This document shows positions 5,409-60,242 of a DNA stretch of 64,000 nucleotides, piece by piece. Within the stretch, counting starts at the first letter, position 1. Each line of letters starts with the position of its first letter. The position numbers were made by a program, and so were the translations under genes. The stretch is taken from assembly GCA_038496445.1 (NCBI GenBank), contig JALMLS010000194.1:1-64000 (forward strand), read 5' to 3'. The notes below the pieces were generated by a model, which was given only the letters and a program-made list of their open reading frames with translations, was not told the DNA's origin and made no database searches. The stretch comes from Trichosphaerium sp. ATCC 40318 (lineage: Eukaryota; Protista; Tubulinea).

Positions 5409-5611
5409 TAAAGGTGCGTAATGTTCAAATTGATATAAAATTTTGATAGCCAAATCTCAACTGTAACAATACGCAAATTGACTGCCGTAGTTAGCGGTTC
5501 TCCCATAACTCACGTAAAATCGTAATATTGAAGTTTAGACTACGTGTAGCAAAACGGTTTGCCAACTGGTGTTTTGCTTGACAAATCCAGCATCAAAATA
5601 TTCGCTTGTTT

Positions 5612-10725: not shown

Positions 10726-12492
10726 TTATAGCATTTTGTTTTCCTTTGCTTTTATGACTTTGATACGCTCAATCACATTGAATCCAAGCTCTTCTAACAC
10801 TTCAGGAATGATTTCACTTTTCTTGATGGCTGCTTTGTTCATCAACGATCCAAGTTCTTGTGCTCTTTTACTCGAAATACCCAACCTCAACAATGTTGAT
10901 TTCCAATCATATTTGGGAGTAGCGACTGATTGATTCTCCTGAGGTGGACAGAACTCCGACTAAATGAACAAAATTAAATGTGAAGAAAATAAAATTAAAA
11001 CGAGACACCTTTGTGTTAGCGACTGAAACATGAGGCTTGTCATTCCATGATTGTTCAGATAAAAGTGACGTGTTGTAGTTTGATGAAACAGGGCGAACAT
11101 TTGAGGTGTCTTCATCAAGTGACAAGCTATGATTGTCAACCTAAAATACCATGTGAGATATGTATCGCTTATTTTCTGATACTTACATTGTTGATGTATT
11201 CATCTCGATTTTGGTGTATTTTAAAGGCTTCAAGGGCATCTTGAATGATATTAAGGTGATCAGGAGCATCTCCAAACTTGGTGTAATCACGATTGGGATC
11301 AACCACAGTTTTTGACAAGTACTTATCTTTTCTGTCTTCTTTTAACTCTGCATTCATTGCTTTCACAGCATCATTGTTTTTATCTTTTGCGATTACTTTA
11401 TTGGCTGGTTTAAAGTGCTTGTAGATTGTCAGACAAAAAGAAAGACAAATAAGATTTCAAAGTACCTTTTCATAATTGGTGAATGTTAACTTTTGTCGTG
11501 TTGATTCACCATAATTATTATATCCACCTGTGACCAACTGAAGGTCATGAGATATTGCCAAGTAATGAAATCGTTTATTGGCAAAATTTTAATGGTTTGT
11601 TTGATGAGAACGAATCAATCCATTCCCCTTCACCCCAACCAAACAAACAACCTTCATCATCAATGACAAATGATGTCCAGTAACCAGCATGTACAGATTT
11701 GATGTTATTGAGTCCTTTGATGATACCCTGGCCATACTCGTCATCAATACCCAACCCAAGACGCCCATTGTAGTTGTGTCCAAAAGAAAATACTTGTCCT
11801 GACTTGAGGAGAACAAGTACATGACTAAAACCAATGGCAATATCAGTGGCATCATCAATACTTGGAACACGTGAAATTGTCTTTGGATTCAAGAATAATG
11901 ATTTATCTATCGCTTCATGATCTGTTGTTCCCCAAAGAAATACATGACCTGTTGATGTCATTGCTCCACTTACACACGTGTTAGTTTGAATTTTTTGAAC
12001 ATTTTGAAGATTTGGAATAACCGCTGGTGATGAAACTTTTGAATTGTCGAATGAATGACCCAATCCTTGATCTCTGTTGTTTCCCCAAGAGTAGACATGA
12101 CCTGATTTTGATAATGCCATACTCACATGATAGGCAGAGACGTTCGTGATATTGTTGAGATTTGGAACACGTGTTGGTGACGAAACACGTGACGCAAAGT
12201 GACCCAGACCCAATTCACCTCGGTTATTACAGCCCCATGCATACACAATACCGTTTGAATCAACTGCAAGGCTATGTTCGTATCCAACAGCAATACAGAC
12301 GATATTTATGAGTGATTTTATTGGTCTTGCGATAGAATTCGTATTTTCGTCTGTATTACCCAATTGACGGTAATAGTTTTGTCCCCATGTGTAAACAAAG
12401 CCATCGTCTGCGATTACCATTGAATGTTCACTACCAGTGGCCAAACGGTTAACATATTGTAAATTAACCGACGAAGTTTGAGGTTCTGCCAT
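10726..12492 (-). pseudogene. RCC1-linker-SAM copy B, frameshifted by a 20-bp deletion in the last RCC1 repeat
   Basis: Same exon set as copy D, but CTCAAGATATTTTCCAGGTA (+ strand) is missing at ~11585, giving a premature stop (..PLKFCQ*). Downstream exons and SAM exon remain intact. Confidence 0.8.
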
Positions 12493-12559
12493 AACCACGC
12501 AATACTGCAAAAGAAATTCGGCGACAAATTGCCAGCTCTTTAAATTTTTTTTCGCGAAG

Positions 12560-13598
12560 ATGCCTTCATCTACTTTCTACGCGTTTTTATTGCTATTGGC
12601 AGTATGTACCTGTGTCATAAATGCTCAAGGGGATTGTTTTTATCATTGCCCGAAAGGAAAGCTAAAACTCAATGCTAAGTAATTCTAACAGCGAATAGGC
12701 AGCGTTAAGATGGTAAATACAAAACACACGCCCACAGCCAATGGATGTGGTGCAATGGGCATACAAGTACGTAAGCGCATCATTTTTAGCGTCTAGATGA
12801 TGTTTTAAGCGTTGTTTATTGATAATCAAGTAAAGTAGCATTAAAGAGCGCTGATTCCCTTCTAGGTATCATCCAAGTTCGATTTTACAAGCTGTTGCAA
12901 CCGTCATGATTATTGTTACGATACATGCAGAAAAGACAAAAAAAAGTGTGATGACGCATTCCACGTACGCTAAGAGATGCAGTGGTTATTTTTTTGTGCT
13001 TCAATCGCGTTTCATGTGCTATTTGAACAAAAAACCGCTCAAAACTGATCAAACAACGCATGAAATCGAATTAAATGCTTCTTTATTGTCTTTCTTGTCT
13101 AACTTCTTTTTTTTCTGTAGCAATGCATGCAAACGCACTGTAGAAAACAATACAAAGCGACTCTCAACATAAATGAATGTTTGGGAATGGTACGAAGTCG
13201 CTTTTTAAACCTCAGCGTCCGTTTTCACAAAAAGTGACGATTTCTCTTTTTTTCAAAAAAACAATTTTTTATGGTGTTCCTACGTACTCCAAGGCCCAAA
13301 GGACTTTGTATTACTATAAAACAACTATTTATAAATCTATTCCATACATTACTGGATTTGTTTGACGGTCATGAGAGGAGATAGGCTTTTTTTACTTTTT
13401 TCTTTTTTTATTCTTATTTTTTTTTTTCTTTAGGCCAAAACGTACTACAGTGGTACTCTCATTTTCGGATGTACTCCATTCTTGGAAAGTCAACAAAACG
13501 CTTGCACGTGTGTTAAGAAAAAGCCAAAAGATTATGATGCTAAACAAGCTGCAAAGAAATCAAAAAAAGCGAAAGACAAGCCAAAGTACGAGCTTTAA
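12560..13598 (+). CDS. Group XII-like secreted phospholipase A2, multi-exon
   Basis: Signal peptide; PTANGCG; FTSCCNRHDYCYDTC catalytic His-Asp motif; CDDAF; FGCTPFLESQQNAC; C-terminal KYEL (KDEL-like). Confidence 0.8.
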
Positions 13599-14088: not shown

Positions 14089-15073
14089 TTACAATTGTTT
14101 GTCTTGGTACTCAATAAAGTCAAGACGCTCAAGTACAGTTAATCCAAGTCTTTTCATAACCTTTCCTGTGACATCGTTCAAGTCAACGCACATACGATTC
14201 AGTTTGGATCCAAATTTTTGTGCTCTTGATTTGTCAAACCCTGCTGATATCAAAGTACTCACCCACTCAATTTTTTCACTTGATTGTACGGTTCTTTCAG
14301 ACGGTTTCGGCTTCTAACAGAAGTGAGTATAATCAATAAAAAACGGTAGCTTGTACATTCACTTTAGCAACATCTGAATGAGTTGTAACAAATGGTGTAC
14401 TAGATAAGTTGATGGTATTCTAAAAACCAGTTAATTAATACAAAATAAACATTTTTTATATTGATGTACCTTGTTGTCAATTACGGAAATATTTGGTTTA
14501 TTTATCCATGAATTTTGAGGCATTGCTGCTCTTGGATCATTTTGTATGTTGTCAGAACGAGTATCATCATTTGGTTGGTCATACTTCTTTATCACTATTA
14601 GCTACACTATTTGATTAGAACATACCTTATTGTAGTCTTTATGGCTTTGACTTATGTTGAGGAAGTTGTTGTCTTTATTTTGGTGTATTTTAAAGGCTTC
14701 AAGGGCATCTTGAATGATATCAAGGTGATCAGGAGCATCTCCAAACTTGGTGTAATCACGATTGGGATCAACCACAGCTTTTGACAAGTACTTATCTTTT
14801 CGGTCTTCTTTTACCTCTGCATTTATTGCTTTCACAGCATCATCGTTTTTATCTTTTGCGATTACTTTATTGGCTGGTTTAAAGTGCTTGTAGATTGTGA
14901 GACAAAAAGAAAGACAAATAAGATTTCAAAGTACCTTTTCATAATTGGTGAATGTTAACTTTTGTCGTGTTGATTGACCATAATTGTTATTTCCACCTGT
15001 GACCAACTGAAAGTCATGAGATATTGCCAAGTAATGATATGCTTTATTGGCAAACTCAAGATATTTTCCAGGT
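14089..15073 (-). pseudogene. RCC1-linker-SAM copy C, 5'-truncated (only the last ~140 bp of the RCC1 exon remain), class II SAM
   Basis: Homology to the other copies stops abruptly at 15073 (..TTTTCCAGGT|CAGG). Exon 2 KEDRKDKYLSKAVVDPNRDYTKFGD is present. Last exon EWVSTLISAGFDKSRAQKFGSKLNRMCVDLNDVTGKVMKRLGLTVLERLDFIEYQDKQL*. Confidence 0.8.
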
Positions 15074-18485: not shown

Positions 18486-20585
18486 ATGACTACTGAACAG
18501 CTGCCTAAAGAGATTTTATCATCTATTCTTTCCGAATTGCCGCTTTGCGAGTTGAATAGAGTGTCGTTGGTTTGTAAGTACGTGATTTTGGTTTAATTAG
18601 ATAAATAACGGTATACAGACGCTGGTCAGACACGTTTAGTAATGAACGGCTTTGGAGGACCCAATTTCGTTCTAGGTGGATGCCACAAAGCGAAGATGTT
18701 CCAAAATCGCATAGACTAGCGTCTAAAACATGGAAAGAGGTAATACATGGCAAAAACAAGCGTTAAAACTCACAATATTACAAGACGTACATTAAACACC
18801 ATATAACGAGTACATGGGATTATATTGATACACGTATAAAGCTTGACGAAGTGCGTTTGGGCAAAATAATGAAATGACACACTTGGCGTTAACGTATATT
18901 TTTTTGAAGGTATGGAACGTTAGTTGGAGTCCAAACGGAGAATATCTTTGTGCTTCAGGCAAGTCTACAAATACCTGCTTTTTTTTTTTTAAAACCTTCT
19001 TCAACAATGACACGTACAGTGGTCGTTCCATAGGACCATGGATGATCTCCTCCAGCGACCACTATGTTGTCATGTTTGTTGAGGTTTTATTTCTTGAAAG
19101 GTACAAGACGTGTTAATTAGTGTTACAGGCGCACATGGTATAAGCTTGTTTAAACTAGAAAATGATGAACTAGTATCTTGGCTTGACCTGGTAGATGGTA
19201 GAAGTGCTGTATCTTCACATAAATGGTCTGAATGTAGTAATTACCTTGTCTATGCTATGAAAGTACGTCAAGCACATTTTTTTTTTGTCACGTGATTTAA
19301 TTTAACCAAACTACAGGACAATGAAGTATGTACTATTTGGTACATGAAAGAGGAAAAGTATGTTGGAACGTTTGATGCGTCACCTTTTGATATAATGCCG
19401 CAGTTTGTGACAATAGAAGATAGGCTCTATTTGCTTACAAGTAAGATTTTCTTGGTACCTTTTTTTTTTTTTTTTTTTTCTTCTTTTTGTTATGTCTTTC
19501 TTTCTGCCTTTCTCTTTATGCTATCTATCTTGTTTTTTACTCATGTTGTTTCAAAGATTGTATTCATAGACGTCAAGTAGTTTTTTCAATATATACTATC
19601 TCTAATGGTAACTTGTTACCTTACAAGGTGGATGACTTTGGGATGACAATTCATAAGATGATACCACAAAAGTATGTATCTGAAATATGGTATTATACAA
19701 TATCAGGTCTGATGGTAACCAATGATCAGAAATATCTTGGCACGTGACAGAATATAAGTCTTTCACGTTTTTTTCGTTTTATTCACAAAAATATCACGTG
19801 ACTTCAAGTTTTTTTGTACTAATTTGGTGGTGACGTTTAGTCGCTTCTTGTTTTGATGAGATAGGTGGTTCAGATTATAAGATAAGCATAGTTGTCTATG
19901 AAATAAGCATGCTCTTCTCAGAAGAAACGAATGTGCTTAATTTTGATAATGCTTATTTACATGTACACGCGCCAGGAGATATTGTTGGATTAGTATGTTC
20001 ACCTGATTCGAAATCTGTGCTAGTAACGTATGTCTGTACAACACTTTTTGCTGTATTTTTTTTTCTCCAATTTTGAAGCTCTTTCGTTCAATTTCTTTGT
20101 TTCTTTTGTCCTTATTTGTCAATTTAACCTCTTATTCAGTTTACGTGCTATTACTGAAGAAGGCAAACTTCTTGAGGATTTACATATAGTAGAAATGTCG
20201 TTAGAGGATGGATCAATGACGACTATTGTTAATACAAAATGTCTTCATGGTGGAGGAGCTGATGTGTTTTTCATTTTTCCTTCATACTCCAATGACGGTA
20301 ATTATATTCTATGTGGTGATAATCATGGGAAAGTGGGTATTTTCACTAGAGGTGGAATAAAGCTGGCTATAATGGAACACAGTAAGTAACAAAAAATGTT
20401 GTGTGGCTTGTTTTTTTTGTTTTCTAATTTTTTTCTTACAAGAAATGAAAAAGCTTGTAAACCAAATATCTTGGCACCCGATAAAAGAAATGTTTGCAAC
20501 TGGATGTGATGATTATACTGTAAAATTATGGAAACCAAAAGCATCCATCGCTCCTCAAAAAGTGCAAGAAACGGAAGAAAACTAA
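18486..20585 (+). CDS. F-box / WD40-repeat protein, multi-exon
   Basis: N-terminal F-box MTTEQLPKEILSSILSELPLCELNRVSLV...RRW....LWR; WD repeats VWNVSWSPNGEYLCAS, YSNDGNYILCG, VNQISWHPIKEMFATGCDDYTVKLW. Confidence 0.8.
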
Positions 20586-20958
20586 TGATTTGATGTCATA
20601 TATGAAGTAAAAAAAAAAAAAAAGCTGTTCTGTGTTTGTCATTCGATTATAAACCTTGTAGTAAAAATATAGTACTAGCTGTATCAAGTTGGTGGCATTC
20701 TGTAAGAAATAGCGAGTTGTCACATCTACCAATCAACAAATCTAACTAACGACAGAAGCTTTCATCAATTGATAATGGAACAATATTTTCTACATTGAAA
20801 TTGTTTGTTAACTGTTTTGATAATACGATTGATTTGCTTGTACTTAGCGAATTTATTGAAAAGGTTTTTGTGTACAATACAAGTATTCTGACTAATTTGC
20901 TATGCTAATTCATCAAAAGGTGTAAATTCTCAGGCCTTCATTAACAATGATGTTCTGT

Positions 20959-22706
20959 TTATAGCATTTTGTTTTCCTTTGCTTTTATGACTTTGATACG
21001 CTCAATCACATTGAATCCAAGCTCTTCTAACACTTCAGGAATGATTTCTCTTTTCTTGATGGCTGCTTTGTTCATCAACGATCCAAGTTCTTGTGCTCTT
21101 TTACTTGAAATACCCAACCTCAACAATGTTGATTTCCAATCATATTTGGGAGTAGCGATTGATTGATTATCTTGAGGTGGACAGAACTCCGACTAAACGA
21201 ACAAAATTAAATGTGAAGAAAATAAAATTAAAACAAGACACCTTTGTGTGAGCGACTGAAACATGAGGCTTGTCATTCCATGATTGTTCAGATAAAAGTG
21301 ATGTGTCTACATCAAGTGGCAAGCGAGGATTGTTAACCTAAAATACCATGTGAGATACGTATTGCTTATTTTCTGATACTTACATTGTTGATGTATTCAT
21401 CTCGATTTTGGTGTATTTTAAAGGCTTCAAGGGCATCTTGAATGATATCAAGGTGATCAGGATCATCTCCAAACTTGGTGTAATCACGATTGGGATCAAC
21501 CACAGCTTTTGACAAGTACTTATCTTTTCTGTCTTCTTTTAACTCTGCATTCATTGCTTTCACAGCATCATCGTTTTTATCTTTTGCGATTACTTTATTG
21601 GCTGGTTTAAAGTGCTTGTAGATTGTGAGACAAAAAGAAAGACAAATAAGATTTCAAAGTACCTTTTCATAATTGGTGAATGTTAACTTTTGTGGTGTTG
21701 ATTCACCACAATGATCTCCACCTGTGACCAACTGAAAGTCATGAGATATTGCCAAGGAATGACATCGTTTATTGGCAAACTCAAGATATTTTCCAGGTAA
21801 TTTTAATGGTTTGTTTGATGAGAACGAATCAATCCATTTTCCTTCACCCCAACCAAACAAACAACCTTCATCATCAATCGCAAATGATGTATACACACCA
21901 GCATGTACAGATTTGATGTTATTGAGTCCTTTGATGATACCCTGGCCATAATCGTCATCAATACCCAACCCAAGACGCCCATCCTCGTTGTATCCAAAAG
22001 AAAATACTTGTCCTGACTTGAGGAGAACAAGTACATGACTAAAACCAATGGCAATATCAGTGGCATCATCAATACTTGGAACACGTGAAATTGTCTTTGG
22101 ATTCAAGAATAACGATTTATCTCTTGCTTCATCTCTTGTTTTTCCCCAAAGAAAGACATGACCTGTTGATGTCATTGCTCCACTTACATAACAATTAGTT
22201 TGAATTTTTTGAACATTTTGAAGATTTGAAATAACCGCTGGTGATGAAACTTTCGAATTGTCGAATGAATGACCCAATCCTTGATTTATGTTGTCTCCCC
22301 AAGAGTACACATGACCTGATTTTGATAATGCCATACTCACATAAAAGGCAGAGACTTTCGTGATATTGTTGAGATTTGGAACACGTGTTGGTGACGAAAC
22401 AGGTGACGCAAAGTCACCCAGACCCAATGCGCCACCTGAATTATATCCCCATGCATACACAATACCGTTTGAATCAACTGCAAGGCTATGTTCGCATCCA
22501 GCAGCAATACAGACGATATTTATGACTGATTTTATTGGTCTTGCGATAGAACTCGAGAATTCGTCTGTGTTACCCAATTGGCGCTCACTGTTTTGTCCCC
22601 ACGTGTAAACAAAGCCATCGTCTGCGATTACCATTGAATGTTCGCCACCAGTGGCCAAACGGTTAACATATTGTAAATTAACCGACGAAGATTGTGGCTC
22701 TGCCAT
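20959..22706 (-). CDS. RCC1-linker-SAM copy D (intact)
   Basis: ORF 21654-22706 is the RCC1 exon, followed by three spliced exons. SAM-like DWKSTLLRLGISSKRAQELGSLMNKAAIKKREIIPEVLEELGFNVIERIKVIKAK. Confidence 0.88.
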
Positions 22707-22856
22707 AAACGTGTATGTTAGTAATACTACAACAATTGGGCAGTAAGTACTTTAGTTGACGCGATCAAATAGTGCGCTCCGCGGCGTTTATTTCGTAAAA
22801 CAGAATTGCGAACCAAACATGTGACGACCTTATTGTTCCATGACCAAACGTCATAT

Positions 22857-30400: not shown

Positions 30401-30821
30401 TTCAGACTATATCATTAATCTATCACATATTCATAATATTGTTAAGGTGTTTGGATCAAGTGATCGTGAGGTTGCGTTCATTCTTCGATCTTTGTGTCTT
30501 GTTCTTGGACCATTTATTTCAATAATGTCTTTGCTCGGCCCAAGAATGTATTACATGACAAAAACAGATGAAGAACTTGACAAGAGCGATAGATCTATGT
30601 CAATGAACCTAAGAATAAACTCAGCTACAACAAACAACCGAAGCTCAGTCAATTGCAGCGAAGAAGTTGATCTACAGAAAAAAGTTGAGACATTACAAAC
30701 ACGTGTTGCTGACTTAGAGAAACAACTAAAAAAAGCAAACGCAAATCCTGATGGTGGTGTTATGCAAACAGATGAAGAATCACAATCAAGCAAGTCATCA
30801 ATCGAAGAAAGTAGTGCGTAA
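27402..30821 (+). CDS. Class C (GABA-B-like / Dictyostelium Grl-like) GPCR, multi-exon
   Basis: Signal peptide MRSLITIALILLSLIAITPSGA; periplasmic-binding-type ectodomain (IRIGSV..., VNARGGI.VNG..Y.VEI); 7TM_3 motifs VIRASQPLF, ARIYRI..IF, YNESR.IG; C-terminal coiled coil. Confidence 0.85.
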
Positions 30822-31106
30822 GAAGCGCACAAGAAGCGTAGCATGTAAACTTAGATACTGTTAAAAAAAAATTATTAAATAAAAACAACTTGTATCCAAA
30901 GAGCCATTAAATACCACTATCACCAAAATACCAGCTGTAGAGGTATTTGCATACCAAGATCCATATACAAGCAAAAAGAGCATTGGTAAAAAAATGTTTC
31001 ATGTGCGGTTAACTAGTAAAAAAAGACGTCCGAGATTTGCCTACCAAAATGAAATTAGGTGGCTATTTTTCAACGCCAACAATTATTACGACCATATCAC
31101 GCGTTT

Positions 31107-32894
31107 ATGGCAGAGCCGCAATCTTCGTTGGTTAATTTACAATATGTTAACCGTTTGGCCACTGGTGAACACCATTCAATGGTAATCGCAGACGATGGCT
31201 TTGTTTACACGTGGGGACAAAACGATCACCGTCAATTGGGTAATACAGACGAATTAACGAGTTATATCGCAAGACCAATAAAATCAGTCATAAATATCGT
31301 CTGTATTGCTGCTGGATACTTTCATAGCCTTGCAGTTGATTCAAACGGTATTGTGTATGCATGGGGCCGTAATTCAAACGGGTCATTGGGTCTGGGTGAC
31401 TTTGCGTCACCTGTTTCGTCACCAACACGTGTTCCAAATCTCAACAATATCACGAAAGTCTCTGCCTTTTATGTGAGTATGGCATTATCAAAATCAGGTC
31501 ATGTGTACTCTTGGGGAGACAACATAAATCAAGGATTGGGTCATTCATTCGACAATTCGAAAGTTTCATCACCAGCGGTTATTTCAAATCTTCAAAATGT
31601 TCAAAAAATTCAAACTAATTGTTATGTAAGTGGAGCAATGACATCAACAGGTCATGTCTTTCTTTGGGGAACAACAAAACATGAAGCGGTAGATAAACCA
31701 TTATTCTTGAATCCAAAGACAATTTCACGTGTTCCAAGTATTGATGATGCCACTGATATTGCCATTGGTTTTAGTCATGTACTTGTTCTCCTCAAGTCAG
31801 GACAAGTATTTTCTTTTGGACACAGCTTGCATGGGTGTCTTGGGTTGGGTATTGATGACGAGTATGACCAGGGTATCATCAAAGGACTCAATAACATCAA
31901 ATCTGTACATGCTGGTTTGCATACATCATTTGCGATTGATGATGAAGGTTGTTTGTTTGGTTGGGGTTTTGGGAAATGGATTGATTCGTTCTCATCAAAC
32001 AAACCATTAAAATTACCTGGAAAATATCTTGAGTTTGCCAATAAACAATGGCATTACTTGGCAATATCTCATGACTTTCAGTTGGTCACAGGTGGAGATA
32101 ATTATTGTGGTGAATCAACACGACAAAAGTTAACATTCAACAATCACCAAAAGGTACTTTGTAATCTCATTCATCTTGCTGTCTATTTGACAAGTCATTA
32201 GCAAACAAACAAAGATACAATCGACACTCAGCAATTGGATGAACAGCCAATCAACAATTCATCAATCAAAGTACATCCATCTGAAGAGATGTTCATATCA
32301 AAAAAGGGTATTCGAGATGTACCTCAGAAATTTGGACAAACAGAACAAGATCTTCAGATTCTCGAAAATGCTCGTAATCTCATTCAATCCAAACAACAAC
32401 AAGTCGCCGATATCAAAGTACGTATACAAACACCAAACTATTTTACATATTTGTCTTATTGTAACACTTTTCAGGATGACTCTATTGATGATTTGTCCAA
32501 ATACAATCCACCCACCAATAAATCTAATCAACGACCACCTATAATCGATGTTGATGATCTTGTATCAAGACAATCATGGGTTCAAGATAAGTTTGAAACG
32601 ATCAACCTCAGCAACGTACAACCAATAATTTTATTTCCTCATTTTTTACTAAATTGGTTTTTTTTGTAGCCTTCAATCGGAGTACCATCTGAATCTTTGA
32701 CAAATAACCAATCTTCATGGGTTTCAAAATTAGTGGTGGCAGGGTTTAGCGAAACAAGATCACAAGAGTTTGGATTATTGTTGGATCGAATGTGCGTTGA
32801 ATTGAAAGATATGACAGGTGAGCTTATGAAAGAGATTGGGTTCACACCATCAGAACGTTTCAAGTTTATCAAATATCAAGACAGCCACATGTAA
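31107..32894 (+). CDS. RCC1-linker-SAM copy E (intact; divergent linker, class II SAM)
   Basis: RCC1 exon ending NNHQK|GT. Divergent exon 2 (FISKKGIRDVPQKFGQTEQDLQILENA). Last exon SWVSKLVVAGFSETRSQEFGLLLDRMCVELKDMTGELMKEIGFTPSERFKFIKYQDSHM*. Confidence 0.85.
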
Positions 32895-33653
32895 CACGCT
32901 ACTCTTGTGAGTACCTAAAGAAGCTGTAATGTAGGACGAATGTCAAAACAAATCAATAAACAGAACTTATAAATTCAAAAACTATTTTGGTTTTTGATAA
33001 GCTGTAACTTAAGTTAACGACATATCCGTTTGTGAGAAGTAACATGGAATATCTATCGCTTGGTTTTATATATTAGAATCTATTTTCCAAATCAAGGCAC
33101 CACAGTAGCGGGTTTATAGTGGCCAATGTACACAATCTTTTACAATGTAATTTTATTTTCGGACAACATCAGTTCGCTTTCCATATTGGGTACCTCTTAC
33201 TCATTACACTAAACTACCGTAACTGACACCTTATTCTGTGACATAAGCTAAAAGCTAAATGCTACATCAATAGTATAAACCAACAATACAATAGATACTC
33301 CACTTTGTTTGCGAAAAGGTGACAGGAAATGTTCGGTTTAAGGGCACAAAAAAAAATAGTTTTTTGGCAATTTCTCAGAATCTACATCCTTCTTCGCCTT
33401 CTCACTACTGTTGACGCATTTATATCACATAGCGGACATGTGACAAAAGTATGGGCACTGTAGGCCACCGTAGTTAAATTGTTAAAATTTCATCAACTTT
33501 CTAGTTTACATGCGGATTTGAACTAACACCCATCCGCATGCAAACCAATAAGTGCAGTGTGCATGCTTCAATAATATAAGAAAAATTATTCCGGCACTCT
33601 GAGGTGTAAACGATCAAATTTAAATTTTTACTTTTTTTGCTCATAGTGCGCCG

Positions 33654-35502: not shown

Positions 35503-35722
35503 AACTTCGAATCACAAATTGTACCAAAAAATCCCGGTCCATGGTGAAATCACTCACAACTTTTCTCAAGTTTTTTTTTTCTGTTGCTACCAAAACTTGT
35601 TTTTTCTTTCTAACAAAGTGTACCGTTTCCATGGAAATATCTGGCGAAATAACTAGTTGACTAACTAACTTGACTGAAACGGACAATAAATACAAAATTC
35701 ATTTTTCATGCCATGGAAGATA

Positions 35723-35983
35723 CGGACCCACGTTTTTTCCGAATTTTTCGAAAGAAAAAATTCGAAAAAATAGAATTCGATACAAAAACCGAATGCCTAT
35801 ACCCACCAATGGATCACTATATGTGAGCGAAGGTCGGGTTCTAGTTCCGAGCACAGCGAGGACCCGACCGTAAGTGAACCAGGCGCTTTCTAGTTTAGTG
35901 GACTGCCCTAGCTATGCATCTTTCTACGAATTCTATTTTTTCGAATTTTTGTTTTCGGAAAATTCGGAAAAAACTATGGCCCC
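35723..35983. mobile_element. MITE copy 1 (261 bp) with 8-bp TSD GGAAGATA
   Basis: Imperfect ~55-bp TIRs (..GTTTTTTCCGAATTTT.CGAAA..AAAAATTCGAAAAAATAGAATTCG). GGAAGATA at 35715-35722 and 35984-35991. A near-identical second copy starts at 40698. Confidence 0.9.
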
Positions 35984-36739
35984 GGAAGATAATCGCAGTA
36001 TTTTACCTACGCAAACTGTACACGGTACGACCAAACCACATATGTGCTCAATGAGCTAAAAGCGAATTAAAACGGTATGATGTCCTACAAAGCTACACGC
36101 ATTACTGCCAAACACACGGCATGAATGCCTCAAACACTGGCTTTACATGCTTCAAAAAATCAACGTACGTGTATAACGTACTAGCGCCTACTCCACGCTA
36201 ACAAAAGCGCTATGGCAGCACCCAAACAGCAAGGCACCCAGTGTAACAATTAATAACGTTAAACCCTCCCCAAACTCCACCAGCGTTGCTGTAGGCTTTG
36301 TAAACGCCGCCAGGTGTCAACTATGTAAATAAAAAATTTTGCTATGGGGTTTGTTAAATCACGTGGGTTTGAAACGGTGATTCAAGCGTGAGGTAGATCG
36401 CATTAAAAAGGACATTTGCAAAATGTGTCATGAGTCAAATCCGTCAGATCTGACAGCTCAGCGGAAACTGGATTTTTTTTGCTAAAAGTCAGTCTCAAGA
36501 CAGACAATGTTAAAAAAAAACAACTTATATCCAAAGAGCCATTAAATACCACTATCACCAAAATACCAGCTGTAGAGGTATTTGCATACCAAGATCCAGA
36601 TACAAGCAAAAGAGCATTGGTAAAAAATGTTTCAGTATGGTTAACTCGTAAAAAAAAGACGTCCGAGATTTGCCTACCAAAATGAAATTAGATGGCTATT
36701 TTTCAAAGCCAACAATTATTACGACCATATCACGCGTTT

Positions 36740-38518
36740 ATGGCAGAGCCACAATCTTCGTCGGTTAATTTACAATATGTTAACCGTTTGGCCACTGGTG
36801 ATGAACATTCAATGGTAATTGCAGACGATGGCTTTGTTTACACGTGGGGACGAAACTATGAGCGCCAATTGGGTAATACAGACGAAAATGAGAGTTATAT
36901 CGCAAGACCAATAAAATCACTCATAAATATCGTCTGTATTGCTGCTGGATACTTTCATAGCCTTGCAGTTGATTCAAACGGTATTGTGTATGCATGGGGT
37001 TATAATTTAAATGGTGAATTGGGTCTGGGTGACTTTGCGTCACCTGTTTCGTCACCAACACGTGTTCCAAATCTCAACAATATCACGAAAGTCTCTGCCT
37101 ATGAAGTGAGTATGGCGTTATCAAAATCAGGTCATGTCTACTCTTGGGGATACAACAGATATCAAGGATTGGGTCATTCATTCGACAATTTGAAAGTTTC
37201 ATCACCAGCGGTTATTCCAAATCTTCAAAATGTTCAAAAAATTCAAACTAATCGGTTTGTAAGTGGAGCAATGACATCAACAGGTCATGTCTTTCTTTGG
37301 GGAACAACAAATAATAAAGCAAGAGATGAAGCAAGAGATAAATCATTATTCTTGAATCCAAAGACAATTTCACGTGTTCCAAGTATTGATGATGCCACTG
37401 ATATTGCCATTGGTTCTCGTCATGTACTTGTTCTCCTCAAGTCAGGACAAGTATTTTCTTTTGGACGCAACTACAATGGGTGTCTTGGGTTGGGTATTGA
37501 TGACAAGTATGGCCAGGGTATCATCAAAGGACTCAATAACATCAAATCTGTACATGCTGGTGTGCGGACATCATTTGCGATTGATGATGAAGGTTGTTTG
37601 TTTGGTTGGGGTAAAGGGAAATGGATTGATTCGTTCAGATCAAACAAACCATTAAAATTACCTGGAAAATATCTTGAGTTTGCCAATAAACGATGGCATT
37701 ACTTGGCAATATCTCATGACTTTAAGTTGGTCACAGGTGGAAATAATCATTATGGTAAATCAACACCACAAAAGTTGACATTCAACAATCACCAAAAGGT
37801 ACTTTGTAATCTCATTCATCTTTCTGTCTATTTGACAAGTCATTAGCAAACAAACAAAGATACTTGCAAATCCGAAGACAATGACATGAAAGAAGACAGA
37901 AAAGACAAGTACTTGTCAAAAGCTGTGGTTGATCCCAATCGTGACTACACCAAGTTTGGAGATGCTCCTGAACATCTTGATATCATTCAAGATGCCTTTG
38001 AAGCCTTTAAAATACTAAATCAAGAAAAAGATGTATTGTTTGTATTACAAAAATAGCTTTTAACACTAACGAACCTGGTAGACTGACAAAGTGTTTACTC
38101 CGTCACCTGATGAATCCAATCTCCAACCTCCAAATGACACGAATGAAATACCGCCACTAAATTCATGGATTGATAAGCCTCAAGTTTCTGTTGTTAACAC
38201 CAACAAGAAGGTAACCATCTTTGTTTTGCGTTCAGAAACAGAAAAATAACATAATTATTTTAGTCGCAATTCAGTCCACCACATGAGACTCAATCAATTG
38301 ATACTGTTGTTCAACCGACACAACCACAGATCGTTAATTGGAAGTTATTGCTTGCGAGGTTGGGCATCAAAAGCGAGAGAGCACAAGAACTTGGATTGTT
38401 GATGAACGAATTACGTATTAAACCTGACGACATTAACCAAGATGTACTGATTGAAATTGGATTCAGTTTGATGGAACGTATCAAAATCACCAAAGCGAAG
38501 CTTAACAACGTCATTTGA
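36740..38518 (+). CDS. RCC1-linker-SAM copy F (intact)
   Basis: RCC1 exon ending NNHQK|GT; an in-frame upstream ATG exists at 36692. Exon 2 QTNKDTCKSEDNDMKEDRKDK... SAM-like NWKLLLARLGIKSERAQELGLLMNELRIKPDDINQDVLIEIGFSLMERIKITKAK. Confidence 0.88.
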
Positions 38519-40697
38519 ATCATTAGGTGAACAATCAAAGAAGAAGTTACAAATACAAAGATGTACTGACGTTGTAGGAGAATAGAATAAATAGTTTTAT
38601 ATTTATTTTATCACGTGTATATCACTAGTTTTTTTTTTTTTTTTTTTGCGTTTTTTTTTGTTAGCCCCTACGTCCACTCTTCTTCAAACAGCTTGGTAGA
38701 AAACCTACCTACTGACTCTCATATGACACCAATGTGGCTCAGTGCTATTTCTTTCAAGAATCGTTAGAGATTAAGTTTTGGCAGGTGCTATAAAAGCTTA
38801 CTCGTTTACAAGGCACTAATCACGCTCACTTTTATTTTTTTTTATTTTCGGATTTGGTATCGCTTTCAAGGTTACTATGGTTACTAGGTATAAATAACCG
38901 CTTGGCGTACATGGGTTTGCACTACTTTTCGCGAAATTGATTAGAGCCACGATTGACTAAAAAATGTGCTGTTTTCTGCAAAAATGTTGTATAAAAGGTC
39001 TCCAAAAGAACAGATTTCGAAATTGATTATAGCCACGATTGGCTAAAAAAAGTGATATTTTGTATGTTATTGAAAAATTAAAGTCCTGTTTGTGATTGTG
39101 AATAAGCACTACATAGCACTTGCTTACATATGTTAATATTCTCATAGAGTGTAAACGTTTATTGTCGTTTATCAAGCTTCCAATACATTAACCAACAACA
39201 GCTGATTTCTTGATGCCATTTTTTTCCAAATCTGAAATTTGTTACCTTCTAAAAGTTGAAACGTTTTTTCTTGTGCTTGTTACAATTATGGCGCCACTAA
39301 TACCACAACATCTAAAGCATGTTTTTAGATGATTTTAAAATTTTCAAGTGCTACAAGTACGTGCATACCTCTGGGTGCTTCAGGGAATACTTGCCTAAAT
39401 GGCACTATTTTTTTGTGTACCATTTATGATAACCTATATAACTATATTTGCATATCATACAATGTGGAATTAAACAGTACCTATATAGTAGGCTACTGTT
39501 CAAATAACATTATGGATTAATATCCGAAAGTATGATGAGTGAAAGGCTCAGTGATTCTACGAAATTTTGTTTAAAAAACAGCGTTTTTGGGTGGCTCTTT
39601 TTTTTCCTTTTTGACTGTACATTAATCCATAGGCTGTGAATGTTTATGGAAAGACAGCTTTGATTTGGACAGGTAATATCACACAACAAGGTAAAACATA
39701 TGTTATTCATGTTACTATTTAGTACTAATGGTATTCAATAAAATCGATCAATTTTAGTCAAAGCCAATGCCGATATATCGGCTGTTGATAAACTACTTAC
39801 GTTTATTTGTCTGCGTTGCATCAACATACATTGGTGCCAACCAAGGGTTTACATAGGAGTTACACCTACCACTCTCAACATGAGAAGAGACAGGACGCCT
39901 ACTAGGCGGACTGTAATTGTCCGGTTAAGACCAACCGCCCAGAAAGGAGTGATCAGGTCAAGTTGTAAAAGCTGACCAAGTTCGTTGATGGTTGATAGCA
40001 ATGTCAGATTGGAGGAGCGCTGGCAGGCGCTCATATTTGTATTTGTGAGTGAATAAACGTTGAGAGCACATGCTGCCACCGTGTTGAATAGAGTTATATT
40101 CCAGCCAGACAATTCTGAGAAGAACCAAGAACTCAATTTGTTGCTTGGGTTTGAGTTTACCTAAGTTGTATAGTATACTAGAGTTGTACTTGAAAGATAG
40201 TTTAAGCGTAGAGCATAGAACAGAGGCCAGATTAGGCGGAGGGGAATAGGCTGTTGATAAAGCTGGAAACACAGAGCACAGGACCTTCAAATTTTTAACT
40301 GTCTTGACGGAACTTACAAGAACTAGCGAAAGTGACAAGATCTGGCGCTGCAAATTTTTGTTTAATTAATAACACGACTTTTGCTAAGGCATTCATGGAT
40401 ATGGCAATAAACTACTTTGCAAGAGAATTTGTATGTAGCAGCTGCCGCTTTAGCTGCTGTTTTTTCTTGTCAACCTTACCAGAACGCTCTGATGTGAGCT
40501 TGCTAATAGGTGCCACTGCCAAATGTGTTTTAAAAAACAGTGCAAAAACTTTATTTTGGCATCGCTGCACGTAGGTGATGCTACGGTAGCATTATTTTGA
40601 GTTTTTGAAACAAAGAGAGCAAGGATAACAATACGGACTATACAGTCACGTCACAGTCAATGTAAACAATACAGCTTTTGATCTCTGTGCAACTCAA

Positions 40698-40950
40698 CGG
40701 ACCCACGTTTTTTCCGAATTTTTCGAAAGACAAAATTCGAAAAAATAGAATTCAATACAAAAACCGAATGCCCTATACCCACCAATGGATCACTATATGT
40801 GAGCAAAGGTCGGGTTCTAGTTCCGAGCACAGCGAGGACCCGACCGTAAGTGAACCAGGCGCTTTCTAGTTTAGTGGACTGCCCTAGCTATGCATCTTTC
40901 TACGAATTCTATTTTTTCGAATTTTTGTTTTCGGAAAAAACTATGGCCCC
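40698..40950. mobile_element. MITE copy 2 (253 bp) with 8-bp TSD CAACTCAA
   Basis: Same element as 35723-35983 with a small deletion in the right TIR. CAACTCAA at 40690-40697 and 40951-40958. Confidence 0.9.
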
Positions 40951-43591: not shown

Positions 43592-45376
43592 TCAAATGAT
43601 GTTGTTAAGCTTTGCTTTGGTGATTTTGATACGTTCCATCAAACTGAATCCAAGTTCAATCAGTACATCTTGGCTAATGTCGTCAGGTTTAATACGTAAT
43701 TCGTTCATCAACAATCCAAGTTCTTGTGCTCTCTCGCTTTTGATACCCAACCTCACAAGCGATAACTTCCAATTAATGATCTGTGGTTGTGTCGGTTGAA
43801 CAACAGTATCAATTGATTGAGTCTCATGTGGTGGACTGAATTGCGACTAAAATAATTATGTTATTTTTCTGTTTCTGAACGCAAAACAAAGATGGTTACC
43901 TTCTTGTTGGTGTTAACAACAGAAACTTGAGGCTTATCAATCCATGAATTTAGTGGCGGTATTTCATTCGTGTCATTTGGAGGTTGGAGATTGGATTCAT
44001 CAGGTGACGGAGTAAACACTTTGTCAGTCTACCAGGTTCGTTAGTGTTAAAAGCTATTTTTGTAATACAAACAATACATCTTTTTCTTGATTTAGTATTT
44101 TAAAGGCTTCAAAGGCATCTTGAATGATATCAAGATGTTCAGGGGCATCTCCAAACTTGGTGTAGTCGCGATTGGGATCAACCACGGCTTTTGACAAGTA
44201 CTTATCTTTTCTGTCTTCTTTTAACTCTGCATTCATTGCTTTCATGTCATTGTCTTTGGCTTTGCAAGTATCTTTGTTTGTTTGCTAATGACTTGTCAAA
44301 TAGACAGAAAGATGAATGAGATTACAAAGTACCTTTTGGTGATTGTTGAATGTTAACTTTTGTCGTGTTGATTCACCAAAATGATTATTTCCACCTGTGA
44401 CCAACTGAAAGTCATGAGATATTGCCAAGTAATGATTTAATTTATTGGCAAACTCAAGATATTTTCCAGGTAATTTTAATGGTTTGTTTGATGAGAACGA
44501 ATCAATCCATTTCCCTTCACCCCAACCAAACAAACAACCTTCATCATCAATCGCAAATGATGTACATATACCAGCATGTACAGATTTGATGTTATTGAGT
44601 CCTTTGATGATACCCTGGCCATACTTGTCATCAATACCCAACCCAAGACGCCCATCCTCGTTGTGTCCAAAAGAAAATACTTGTCCTGACTTGAGGAGAA
44701 CAAGTACATGCTCATAACCAGTGGCAATATCAGTGGCATCATCAATACTTGGAACACGTGAAATTGTCTTTGGATTCAAGAATAATGATTTATCTCTTGC
44801 TTCATCTTTTGTTGTTCCCCAAAGAAAGACATGACCTGTTGACGTCATTGCTCCACTTACAAACAAATTAGTTTGAATTTTTTGAACATTTTGAAGATTT
44901 GGAATAACCGTTGGTGATGAAACTTTCCAATTGTCGAATGAATGACCCAATCCTTGATATATGTTGTTTCCCCAAGAGTAGACATGACCTGATTTTGATA
45001 ACGCCATACTCACATGAAAGGCAGAGACTTTCGTGATATTGTTGAGATTTGGAACACGTGTTGGTGACGAAACAGGTGACACAAAGTCACCCAGACCCAA
45101 TGCGCCATATGAATTACAGCCCCATGCATACACAATACCGTTTGAATCAACTGCAAGGCTATGTTCGTATCCAGCAGCAATACAGACGATATTTACGAGT
45201 GATTTTATTGGTCTTGCGATATAACTCTCATTTTCGTCTGTATTACCCAATTGGCGATAGTTTTGTCCCCACGTGTAAACAAAGCCATCGTCTGCGATTA
45301 CCATTGAATGGTATCCACCAGAGGCTAAACGGTTAACATATTGTAATTTAACCGACAAAGATTGTGGTTCTGCCAT
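43592..45376 (-). CDS. RCC1-linker-SAM copy G (intact)
   Basis: ORF 44285-45376 is the RCC1 exon. 3' exons and introns are nearly identical to copy F, in inverted orientation; TGA at 43592. Confidence 0.88.
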
Positions 45377-45652
45377 TTAAACGCGTGTAATGAGCTCAAA
45401 TTGATATTTAATTTTGATAGCCAAATCTCAACTATCTAGAGCGAATTTTGCTAAGCAGTGCCACTTGTTGTACACACGTAAATACGCATGGGAAACATGT
45501 TGTCACTAGTTTTAGTGCGTTTGTGTTATTTTGAAAGTCAAAAAAAAATCAATACTGTTTACGCGCAAAAAAAGTCAAATTTTTGCTGCGAAGAATTTAA
45601 ATCACTATTTCCTCCACTTGTTAGGCTTTGGCAGTACTGATACTGCTGTTGC

Positions 45653-49836: not shown

Positions 49837-52800
49837 TTAGAAATTCTCCTTGTGGTAGACAAATTTGGTACCGTTCCTCGTGTACTTTATAGCAGCCTCA
49901 TTAAGCTTCTTAGAGAAAATAGGAGGTCCACAAAAGAACACTCCTATTTTTTCGCCCTTGTATCGCTGCTCCTGTTGCTGGAATATCTGCGGTATCTTAG
50001 GCCTGTGGTAGTTTGTACGGGCTTCAAGACTAAACAAAAAAAGAAAACGTCAGAAGAGAGATATTTGGGTTTAAACGTTTAAAAAATGGAAACGTTTTTT
50101 GGAAAGTCTCAGACATAAATGTGTGAACTAAACAATCTTTTTATTGCTACGGCAAGAAATTTACGTTCAAGTAACATGAATAAAATAGTTTGATAAAAAC
50201 ACGTAGATGCGTAGACGCGTAAAAAGTAAGAAAATAAACAAAACTACAAAAAAAAAATTTTAAATGCTTACCCAGTTACTTGATCAGGGGCATCATCACC
50301 AGCGATCATAACAGCCTTTATTTGATCAGGAGAGAGCGCAGAAGTTAAATAGATATTAATCTCGAGGAAATCACTGCTTGACTTAGATTCTAGATCTATA
50401 ATAGATAGGGTAAACATAAGCGATGTTTGGACCGATTGTTGTGAATTAGAAATAAAAGCCAAAATAATTCAATCTTTAATAAAAAAAGTTGTAGACGCAA
50501 GTTTACGCAAAACAACGCTTATTTGAGAGCATTACGTGTGCGTAGAGGTTTGTTTTTTATTTGTTAGAAAAAGGGTATTGTTGGCACTGTGTAACGGCAT
50601 AAATGACGCTAGATCACCATGACAATAATAGAGATTTTGAATTGGGTATAAGCCATACGATAATAAAACAAAAAAATCCAATTAACGAAAGGGTTTACGC
50701 GTAAACATATTTTTTGCCCAACTTTGAGAAAAGGGAAAAAAAAAACTGCGTTTAGGAAAAAAGTCTGACAACTCAATTGATTATAAAAACTGACGCTATG
50801 GCGCGTAGAGAAGACAGTCTAGATTTTTTTCCAAATGGCGTTATACAGTAAAATCTTTTTTGTAGACTAGAATAGAATTAACACACGTACCGGATAGTAG
50901 ATCAATGAACCATTCGAAGGCATGACGATCTCTGTTGGACCAATAAAAGTGCACTTTGTTAAGGTTTGTTAGATTTCCTTCGTCTATTTGGTAACGGATG
51001 TCCTTTAGGATGGATGCCATTGGCGTAACACCGATACCAGCTGAGAAGAGCATCAAATTCTTAAATTTGTAGAACTCCTCTGAAGCAGCTCCATAAGGCC
51101 CATCAACGAGCAGGATAGGCTTTCCGTTTGGTGCAGTCAACATGTTTTCCTGTATAACACCAATTTCTTTTTCTGGGTTGAGAAGCTGGTAGAGTTCTCC
51201 TGTCCAATCACCAACAATCTAAATTACATTAAATCAGCAAATTTTTTTATAACCTAGCAACAGCACCAACTCAAACAGTGTGCTTAACGCCTTTCACTTT
51301 AAGCCAGAAATGCACGTAAATAAAAAATACAACTACACGTACTCGAATATGAACTGATAAGAAATCTTCGTCAGGACTACTACTGATAGTAAAAGGATGC
51401 CACTCGTAGTCAGCAATATATGGACATTGCAAAAAGATGTATTGACCTGGCTGGTAGTTGAAGGTAGCTTTCTTCATACGAATCTCCAATACGCGTGAAG
51501 GGTGTTGTATTGCCTTTAAAATAATAGTCTTTTGAGAACCACGGATGAGTCTGATAAGACGTTCAAGAGCATAGAACGAAAATGGTCCAAGAACCCAAAT
51601 CCAAAAGTTTGCACGCTCAAGTAGCTCCAATTGACCTTTTTCGTAAAGTGTAAGTGAAAGAAATACAAAAAGGGTTTTTCGAGTTATGAATCTACACGCG
51701 TAGCACGCGTAGTTCAAATTTACAATTACTAAATACTATTTTGTAGACTTGTTTAATATGCATAAAAACGTACCATGTGCGGCTATGAGACCATAGAAAA
51801 CAATAAAGAGATGGTGAGTGTACCAAAAGGCCTCAAACATATTGCTCCTCACGTATTGCACAGCAGACGTGTACATTAGAACCATCACAATACTAGTGAG
51901 TACCCCAGTGATACCAGGAAGGCGAGCAAACACCTACAATAAAAAAATTAAATAAATAAATCTCTTTATACCAACCAACGCAACATAGTATTTAATGACG
52001 CAATGGTACAACAAAAAAGAACGATTTGGGAAATGAAAAAAACAAAAAAAACAAAAAACAAAAATGAGCGAAAATGTCGTCCTTCGTTGTGCTTTATAGA
52101 AGTACGTACAACAACCCAATAAGATACAGGATCAGGTGAGAGGTTCAATGCAACCAATTCATCAGATGTAGCACGGTTACTTGTGACATTCCAGAAATTA
52201 ATAAAATGAGCTCCAGAATGGAATGTAACCAAAACCATTACCCACCAAGCTACGAACTTGTGGAATACTATATTCTTATCTATAGGTAGATACGTGCCAA
52301 CGAATGAGCCGCGAAGACTAAAAATCATCAGCGAAATTTTTTTTTGTTTTTTTCAAATAAGTCTTATTTAGCTTCGTTTTCTTTGCAGTATTCGAGTTGT
52401 CAGCTTGTTTTGTTTGCTCCAAAATTACGTACAAAGATAAAAAGTTTCTCAGTACGCAAACAAGAAGAAACGCCGCGTTAAACTTAATAGCAGCTGCTGT
52501 ACCGCGAGCAATACATAAACCGTGACCAAGGACCTAAAAAAGGTATTTAGCGGCTAATTTAGTTTACTTATTCTTTCTTTAAAAACAACCCATTTACTGT
52601 ATTGAGCGCGTATGTTTATAGCAAAAGAGTATTTTTGCGTACTTGAAAAGGAGTAATCTGAATACCTGGTGTAAGGTCGCTTTGGTCTTGTCTTACCATG
52701 TAATCTTTGCAATGGCGTTAGCTAATTGGAATTTCGTAATAACCGTACAGTGGTACCGTTCTCCGATTAACACAATGTTAATTATAACGTAAACTATTAT

Positions 52801-53145
52801 GAATATCAGTTTGACGCCATCATTTACCCAGTAATCGTGTATTCGTTCGCGTATTGTCTTTTTGAGTTTAGAAGCTGTTGAAGGAGTACCAACGGGATCT
52901 ATTGAGCCTTGTGGGGCTGTACTTATTCCAGCCAAAGGCTCTTTGTTGCTCTTTGCCTTTTTGCCAGGTTTTGCAGCTTTAGGTTTATCAAAACTATCGT
53001 CGTCCTGTGGCGGTAGCGCTGGCGGTGCGTTAGTGTATTGCTCAGCCGATTCATCGTCGTCCATTGGAGGCAATGGCGGAAGCCCGCGAGGATTGTTCTC
53101 TTCGGGCTCAGGAGGAAGTGGTGGTGGTGCTCGATTAGATGCCAT
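49837..53145 (-). CDS. nox: NADPH oxidase (gp91phox/Nox family) with a Pro/acidic N-terminal extension, multi-exon
   Basis: Heme His motifs FHKFVAW...HSGAH and FWYTHHLF...AAHG; FAD motif EWHPFTISS; NADPH motifs VDGPYG, GIGVTP, GVFFCGP; terminal HKENF*. Confidence 0.95.
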
Positions 53146-55437: not shown

Positions 55438-55774
55438 AAAAAGGGTGTAAGGAATCCATATCTCTTTTTCCTCTGGCTGGACTTGTTGTCACAAAGTCTG
55501 CCTCACTTGTATATCGAAGTAGTGTACACAAAAAAAGCAATAAACCCATACACTTGTATCATACATACTTTTTCTTTTTACCTTGCTTGGTCATCAACCA
55601 AGTTTTTTTTTATAGCTTACCATTCTTTTTCTTACTGATTAAGTATTAAAACAAGAGCTCTGGCGTGTTCTACTACAAGAGTATTAGCCTACAAAAAAAA
55701 AAAGAAAAACCGTCGCACGCTTTGAATCGGGTTTTGAAAAAGTCAAATGATCGAGTATTCATACCGCCTCAGTA

Positions 55775-59893: not shown

Positions 59894-60242
59894 AAAGGGC
59901 TGTGAGAAAAGAAAATACTCATCGAATAAAAAAAAAACAAAACAAAAAAAAACAGTTTCAATCTGGTGTGCAATCTAAAATTGCTCGTGTTTAGCTTTAC
60001 AATCTTCACGTGGGTAGGTTCATTTTGTTAGATGCAAAGCAGTTGAGTTTCGCGTTCTTTTTGTGGATGTAGCACTCAAAAGTACTTGGCACTTGCCAAG
60101 ACAAAGACAATCGTTTAAATAGGCGCAGGAACATGTAGTAACTCATCTGCGGCAGGTTTAAAACCTACCATAAGAAATGGCGTCAAGCTTAGTAGTTCAA
60201 AAGCCAACGAATATTGAGCACATCACGTAACCTAACGTTTTA

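Follow-up and report, generated by a model that had tools for sequence, protein, structure and literature searches.

Evidence for sequence exchange in the propeller exon of clustered RCC1-like paralogues from Trichosphaerium sp. ATCC 40318

We analyzed a 64,000-nucleotide (nt) stretch of the Trichosphaerium sp. ATCC 40318 assembly GCA_038496445.1 (contig JALMLS010000194.1, positions 1 to 64,000; hereafter the window), which contains a cluster of paralogous genes whose first exon, ~1.05 kb long, is predicted to encode an RCC1-like beta-propeller. The exon consists of a nearly uniform framework interrupted by short groups of hypervariable codons, which we call slots. Two adjacent inverted copies, D and E, are identical over one long internal segment and differ on both sides of it; variable characters along the exon conflict with any single tree; and divergence within the exon is decoupled from that of the sequence next to it. 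To judge from these patterns, sequence exchange between the copies is their best explanation, and we consider it probable that the cluster is a birth-and-death family of RCC1-propeller genes in which ectopic conversion or recombination repeatedly copies pieces of the propeller exon between paralogues. All counts given below refer to this one 64-kb window of one assembly, which holds eight full copies of exon 1 (A, B, D, E, F, G, H and I) and one fragment (C). Long open frames are retained in six of the nine, B, I and C being defective.

Copy A, exon 1: positions 4347-5408, minus strand; intact.
Copy B, exon 1: positions 11466-12492, minus strand; pseudogene with a 20-nt frameshifting deletion near its 3' end and the most private framework changes.
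Copy C: positions 14675-15073, minus strand; 5'-truncated fragment made of the final ~130-140 nt of exon 1 and downstream sequence.
Copy D, exon 1: positions 21663-22706, minus strand; intact, head to head with E at a distance of ~8.4 kb (inverted repeat).
Copy E, exon 1: positions 31107-32153, plus strand; intact, predicted seven-bladed RCC1 propeller, followed by a GT intron at 32154-32200.
Copy F, exon 1: positions 36740-37798, plus strand; intact; its 5' flank resembles that of E and its 3' flank that of G.
Copy G, exon 1: positions 44333-45376, minus strand; intact, with an A-like 5' flank and an F-like 3' flank.
Copy H, exon 1: positions 55775-56830, plus strand; open reading frame (ORF) with a 9-nt in-frame deletion.
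Copy I, exon 1: positions 60243-61287, plus strand; pseudogene with two 1-nt deletions, both within slots.

The clearest trace of exchange lies between D and E. An earlier sequence-only reading of the window had pointed to E 31466-31625 as a patch identical to the reverse complement of D 22188-22347. This patch is indeed identical, and it lies within a longer, uninterrupted identity of 288 nt (E 31384-31671, plus strand; D 22429-22142, minus strand). As that reading had also stated, E and D differ on both sides: mismatches start at once at each end, in the slot at E 31374-31384 and in the slot that begins at E 31672. Six states within the tract are confined to D and E, namely the slots FYV, DNIN, DNS and CY, a silent GTG codon (E 31505) and a Pro-to-Ser change (E 31584) that produces PAVISNL; all had been listed beforehand, and all are present and private to the pair.

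We assessed this tract after merging the adjacent variable columns of each cluster into one character, a conservative treatment that left 62 characters. The D/E tract then amounts to 16 consecutive matching characters (global p=0.002 over 28 pairs, with the character order permuted), and a mismatch-tolerant score similar to that of GENECONV gave p=0.001-0.002 for the same pair. Maximum-likelihood (ML) trees of three exon-1 segments conflict with one another. The tree of the tract segment unites D and E in a clade of zero length (98% bootstrap support), and approximately unbiased (AU) tests on this segment reject the trees of both flanking segments (p=4e-5 and 0.0025). At the divergence measured in the flank shared by D and I (see below), zero differences over 288 nt would have a probability of ~0.04. 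The tract thus shows internal identity longer than expected by chance together with divergence on both sides. Because the patch is internal and the two neighbours are inverted and 8.4 kb apart, its simplest route would be non-crossover conversion, in a recent event that spanned at least 288 nt. The alleles of the tract occur nowhere else in the window, and the direction of transfer between D and E therefore cannot be told.

Conflict among characters is not limited to this segment. Under a multi-state criterion, which already accommodates retained ancestral alleles, 140 of the 351 pairs of informative characters (40%) are incompatible; with the AU rejection of neighbouring-segment trees, this agrees with the earlier remark that no single tree fits. 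The informative framework sites contain 83 incompatible pairs; data simulated on the best ML tree averaged at most 15 and reached 67 at the highest, extreme rate heterogeneity included (alpha=0.1, 90 mutations; p<0.0005). The minimum number of recombination events of Hudson and Kaplan is at least 29 for all sites and at least five for the nine silent sites that are biallelic and lie in codons with an invariant amino acid. These nine sites define the splits BG, BE, BH, AD (twice), DE, FGH, GHI and DFGI, and 17 of their 36 pairs fail the four-gamete test, as do six of 15 when the three CpG sites are left out (a count made from the splits just listed). Silent-site incompatibility of this kind goes beyond recurrent mutation and is that of a family with interlocus gene conversion. 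Codon usage provided further evidence: among the 271 pair comparisons in which two copies share the residue at a hypervariable position, the codon is also shared in 264, whereas family codon usage predicts 150 ± 8. Shared slot alleles therefore appear to be identical by descent and not convergent.

Sequence adjacent to exon 1 served as an internal clock. The exon-1 framework differs by ~2% in every pair, with silent divergence of 2.7-6.7% (about 4.6% at silent sites). Over the 300 nt that follow the exon (intron 1 and exon 2), pairwise divergence ranges from 1 to 48%, and its correlation with exon-1 silent divergence is r=-0.40. There, B, D, H and I are 1-2.4% apart, A stands ~12% from this group, F lies 2.8% from G, with ~20% separating the two from the remaining copies, and E can hardly be aligned at all (~47% mismatch). 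The frameworks of D and E show only 11 differences in 858 sites (~98-99% DNA identity), despite last exons that, although homologous (E 32697-32891, plus strand; D 20962-21126, minus strand; BLASTP E=4e-13), are only 34% identical in protein. Two stretches of shared flanking sequence bear on this:

Positions 18957-22720, minus strand: D arm of an inverted duplicon common to D and I; the partner arm, 60228-64000, reaches the window end.
Positions 30875-31106, plus strand: 5' flank common only to E and F (36510-36739 in F), 96% identical over ~235 nt.

Downstream of exon 1, the arms of the D-I duplicon have ~98.9% identity along 2.7 kb (30 mismatches), whereas exon 1 itself reaches only 94%. Nine of 183 silent exon-1 sites differ between D and I (Fisher p=0.0005 against the downstream identity). 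At six of the nine, both variants are carried by other copies, and these variants therefore look imported and not new; the other three are private (~1.6%), which matches the flank. The duplicon (18957-21650; 61290-64000) continues for at least 2.7 kb past the RCC1 gene and also contains a convergent WD40-like gene, with ORFs at 19110-20585 on the plus strand and a 'CDDYTVKLWKP' motif. The flanks are themselves mosaic: the 3' flank of F is 98% like that of G and the 5' flank of G shares ~57 nt with that of A. Homology among the copies starts sharply, ~10-12 nt upstream of the ATG. We compared the 5' flanks, which are presumed promoters, at 5409-5470, 12493-12560, 22707-22760, 31050-31106, 45377-45440, 55700-55774 and 60180-60242, and found them to be unrelated except in the E/F and A/G pairs, even where the 3' flanks are 98-99% identical. 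By these comparisons, exon 1 apparently behaves as a thoroughly mixed pool whose divergence is independent of that in the remainder of the gene, as expected of concerted evolution by ectopic conversion.

We then considered what the exon encodes and where its variation falls. Pfam recognizes exon 1 of D and E both as an RCC1-like domain (PF25390; 193-195 bits against a cut-off of 150, E=4e-57 for copy E) and as RCC1 repeats (PF00415; 109-119 bits against a cut-off of 21.7, E down to 1e-35). An AlphaFold model of D is all-beta with a periodicity of ~50 residues (predicted local distance difference test, 88; predicted template modelling score, 0.88), and the exon 1 product is, on this model, a seven-bladed RCC1-like beta-propeller. 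The nearest public proteins found in a word-based protein search with exon 1 of D are distant RCC1 proteins, at most 33% identical. Across the eight copies, 41 exon-1 codons show three or more residues, 45 show two and 269 are invariant. Although predicted strands make up 49% of the residues, 32 of the 38 hypervariable positions that could be mapped lie outside them. The same arrangement is seen once in each blade: hypervariable positions occupy the GxxHS hairpin and the WGxNxxGxLG loop, with pairs at residues 21/22, 71/72, 121/122, 171/172, 221/222, 271/272 and 314/315. Given the blade topology, in which these would be the AB and CD loops, the slots should lie on one side of the propeller.

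Residues at the hypervariable positions are enriched in Tyr (13% vs 2.8%), Glu, Arg, His, Phe and Cys. The proportions of nonsynonymous and synonymous differences (pN and pS) are 0.44 and 0.19 in hypervariable codons, compared with 0.020 and 0.048 in the framework, and the slots differ at ~29% of nucleotides, the framework at ~2%. The framework makes up ~85% of exon 1, and slot columns are ~20% of the alignment columns.

Several results weigh against exchange among the copies of the window as a sufficient account of this pattern. Other patches had been proposed to cut across the D/E grouping, and those in question (F/G NESY, E/F YF, B/D/E FSH, D/G NEDGR, H/I NE + WN + DKL and A/G/H CNSYG) are all present in the protein alignment, but each is a single-slot match and none is significant as a tract. 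Of the 28 pairs, the GENECONV-type test singles out D/E, and no other pair has a significant multi-slot tract, with or without mismatch tolerance. The pairwise homoplasy index (PHI) was calculated for the eight sequences. It is significant at the nucleotide level (p=0.001 for w=50 and 0.027 for w=100), owing to linkage within slots and to the D/E tract, but p rises to 0.38 when the slots are collapsed, and significance is lost without D or without E. Incompatible pairs amount to 44-61% at distances below 40 nt and to about the same beyond 640 nt, with no decay; tracts of an ordinary 100-1000 nt would be expected to preserve a degree of linkage. The flat profile implies that the tracts are very short or numerous, that the donors lie mostly outside the window, or that the slots have a mutation process of their own.

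Few of the slot alleles recur within the window, and this is true even of the recent duplicates B, D, H and I; their donors must therefore be located in other parts of the genome, or else the slots are diversified in some other way. One contig from a public run carries, at the slot at 32046-32051, the allele CAATAT, which none of the copies in the window has; there should therefore be more family members, elsewhere in the genome or in another strain. Six of the eight exon-1 indels fall in slot columns (binomial p ~0.001, hand calculation), among them both 1-nt frameshifting deletions of pseudogene I (60943-60950 and 61095-61100; alignment columns 703 and 854). This hints at slot-focused mutation, although the in-frame indels could reflect selection. 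Finally, the Logan contigs of four public runs break at slots, and none spans the D/E tract or links more than one slot. The earlier proposal that segmental gene conversion shuffles loop alleles consequently stands in part: exchange is supported by the D/E tract, by the silent-site conflict and by the decoupling of exon 1 from its flanks, but shuffling among nine copies leaves the loop diversity unaccounted for.

These results could be taken to mean that the slots are diversified directly, by targeted error-prone repair, hypermutation or single-loop templated micro-conversion, possibly as an ongoing process in clonal lines, and that conversion of the D/E type is only an occasional overlay. We regard this as rather unlikely. 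In its favour, B, D, H and I, so similar in the 3' flank, differ by 25-33% in slot columns, like any other pair, and the pN of hypervariable codons far exceeds the pS of the framework. Third positions of four-fold codons differ too where the residue differs (6 of 20), slots less than 40 nt apart show no linkage, and unique slot alleles are found even in the truncated fragment C. It would also accord with the six indels that lie in slots, two of which are frameshifts in a pseudogene. Against this, neither a template array nor cassettes are present in the window, and some slot alleles are single steps apart, as by ordinary substitution. The slot residues include W, K, E and Q, which is not an A-directed pattern of the type generated by diversity-generating retroelements (DGRs). 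Moreover, the silent framework incompatibility requires exchange in any case.

DGR-type adenine mutagenesis, which would restrict variation to template adenines (typically in AAY-derived codons) and involve a template repeat with a reverse transcriptase close by, was also considered as a candidate in its own right. It was rejected, given the slot residues just named, the varying third positions and the lack of an extra exon repeat in the window; no search aimed at a reverse transcriptase was made.

A bolder version of slot-directed change would be a dedicated, high-frequency diversification of exon 1 alone, by templated micro-conversion on the scale of a loop or by targeted mutagenesis and perhaps in clonal lineages, that creates combinatorial RCC1 binding faces and is unrelated to the immunoglobulin (Ig), leucine-rich repeat (LRR) and DGR systems. 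We think this unlikely, and keep it in view because of the unlinked slots, the slot indels, the unique alleles in duplicates and in fragment C, and the sharp start of homology near the ATG.

Mosaics could also arise as artefacts of assembly or polishing, if short reads of paralogues were misplaced on a noisy long-read draft, made the framework uniform and pasted alleles of D into E or the reverse. The near-identical framework would allow short reads to map to several copies, the breakage of public contigs at slots is in keeping with such an origin, and the best public run holds 35% of the sampled words. Nevertheless, no copy other than D and E has the tract alleles, which make up a single clean block that ends at slots, and not a majority consensus. 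Independent runs carry the segment with PAVISNL and CY (contig 31559-31655), the YEH of G and the Lys allele of F and I, all as assembled, and public contigs confirm the deep flank groupings and the spliced, divergent tail of E. The long open frames kept in six of the nine copies also argue against an artefact, which we hold to be decidedly improbable.

A history without exchange seems very improbable. It would consist of rapid, tree-like duplications, with the patchwork made up of retained ancestral slot alleles and of parallel or convergent change among a limited set of favoured residues. The tree is star-like, its internal branches making up only 14% of its length; many of the shared states are found at two-state selected sites beside slots (R/Q, D/H, C/R); and single-slot sharing is non-significant as tracts. 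However, convergence is at odds with the near-complete codon identity of shared residues, and a tree is at odds with the 17 incompatible pairs of silent sites. The conflict between informative characters persists under a multi-state test that allows ancestral retention, exon-1 divergence is unrelated to flank divergence, and no such history can yield the D/E block.

A programmed system of the antigenic-variation type (VSG, pilin, vlsE or chicken Ig), in which the pseudogenes B, C and I would be silent donors to an expressed copy as the sequence-only reading had suggested, is extremely improbable: of the nine copies, the three defective ones have rare alleles in common with intact ones (B-G, B-E, B-H, I-F, I-H and I-E), and segmental transfer exists in the D/E tract, but the sole clear tract connects two intact genes in a direction that is not discernible, B and I are decayed full-length genes and C a truncated one, all with flanks of their own and not a promoterless cassette array, the six intact copies with unrelated 5' flanks do not point to a single expression site, and all of the variation seen is germline variation in one assembly. 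In a 14-mer scan of the window for donor cassettes, we found no exon-1-like fragments beyond the nine copies.

We therefore return to ectopic exchange in a birth-and-death family as the preferred explanation. Ectopic (interlocus) gene conversion between the clustered paralogues would homogenize the framework, shuffle short segments of exon 1 and scramble the tree signal, while selection for different binding faces, or extra slot-focused mutation, would hold the ~41 loop codons diverse. The donors would probably also include copies elsewhere in the genome. We infer that conversion is the molecular mechanism, that selection is what keeps the slots diverse and that the older tracts are short or overlapping.

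Systems that combine exchange between paralogues with diverse binding residues have precedents. In plant clusters of NLR (nucleotide-binding leucine-rich repeat) and other resistance (R) genes, such as RPP8, RPP5 and Cf-4/9, hypervariable solvent-exposed LRR residues go together with intergenic exchange. Like the cluster described here, they comprise clustered tandem or inverted paralogues that undergo birth and death, pseudogenes included, on a conserved repeat scaffold. In both, diversity is concentrated at positions that face, or here would face, the ligand, and the alleles are patchworks attributed to interlocus conversion or unequal crossing-over. A source on such clusters is bioRxiv 10.1101/694240. 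The present genes differ in that they belong to a protist and in that their product would be an RCC1 beta-propeller with a small helical tail and not a nucleotide-binding LRR protein; the contrast between framework and slots is also sharper, and homogenization is confined to one exon.

The small HERC genes of mammals share the domain type. According to PMC7775381, their RCC1-like domain is under positive selection and is exchanged between paralogues, and conversion has been proposed between the RCC1-like domains of HERC5 and HERC5/6. The mammalian genes comprise only two or three paralogues, with a few selected codons and an attached HECT ligase domain. By contrast, the family studied here has at least nine copies, ~41 hypervariable codons on seven predicted blades and no HECT domain. 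Micro-conversion also characterizes the MHC class I/II and KIR families, which resemble this cluster in their short patches of motifs shared between loci, their silent-site incompatibilities and their diverse binding residues set in a homogenized remainder. Exchange in MHC and KIR is, however, both allelic and interlocus and has been studied in populations, whereas our comparison is between paralogues of a single haploid assembly.

Programmed conversion operates with the Ig V pseudogenes of chicken and rabbit, in the VSG mosaics of Trypanosoma, at pilE/pilS of Neisseria and at vlsE of Borrelia. As in the present cluster, homologous copies pass parts of a variable region to one another, and pseudogenes could in principle act as donors. 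Such systems depend on one expression site, an array of silent cassettes and transfer in a single direction, with change taking place inside one individual or clone; we saw none of these features in the window. Programmed segmental gene conversion is treated in PMC3924843. In full-text literature searches, we found no earlier account of protists with a hypervariable RCC1 family. In our analysis, the exchange process appears to match the interlocus exchange of plant R-gene clusters, MHC/KIR and HERC, and it is the scaffold and the framework/slot contrast that stand out.

We consider two things solid: the D/E segment as a genuine conversion tract, and exchange that pervades the propeller exon and does not go beyond it. 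To treat each single-slot patch as a tract, or to draw the analogy with antigenic variation, is to over-read the data. If it is true that selection keeps the slots different against a homogenizing flux, the family would be a protist parallel to the evolution of plant R genes and MHC and a candidate recognition repertoire. If instead the slots diversify by a mechanism of their own, it would represent a new kind of variable-receptor system. The recent duplicates, D-I and the group B, D, H and I, provide an internal clock that makes the distinction between selection and a separate mechanism testable with all genomic copies or with other strains.

Beyond exon 1, which ends at a GT donor, the genes continue with short (~50-nt) GT-AG introns and three small exons. 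For copy E, these were placed with spliced public contigs:

Positions 32201-32417, 32475-32615 and 32670-32966 or beyond, plus strand: downstream exons of E, with GT..AG joints; they form a tail only remotely related to those of the other copies.

The contigs confirm the introns at 32418-32474 and 32616-32669, and one contig starts at 32201. When the tail exons were each searched singly, Pfam recognized no SAM domain in them, and we describe the C-terminal tail of the gene only as a short helical region.

Upstream of E, at 30447-30871, lies an ORF whose product would be hydrophobic towards the N terminus and coiled towards the C terminus. It is covered at 100% identity by contigs from two independent public runs; those runs therefore include this organism or a very close strain, and the ORF is probably expressed. 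Between G and H, we read from ORF translations a multi-exon candidate gene of the NADPH-oxidase/ferric-reductase type (50841-53145, minus strand; HPFTISS and FAD/NAD-binding motifs) and a candidate gene for a CID-domain (RPRD-like) protein (53577-53948, plus strand), which look like ordinary eukaryotic housekeeping context. A 242-nt direct repeat that is unrelated to the RCC1 exon (35722-35962 and 40697-40938; 98% identical, 5 kb apart) brackets the region of copy F.

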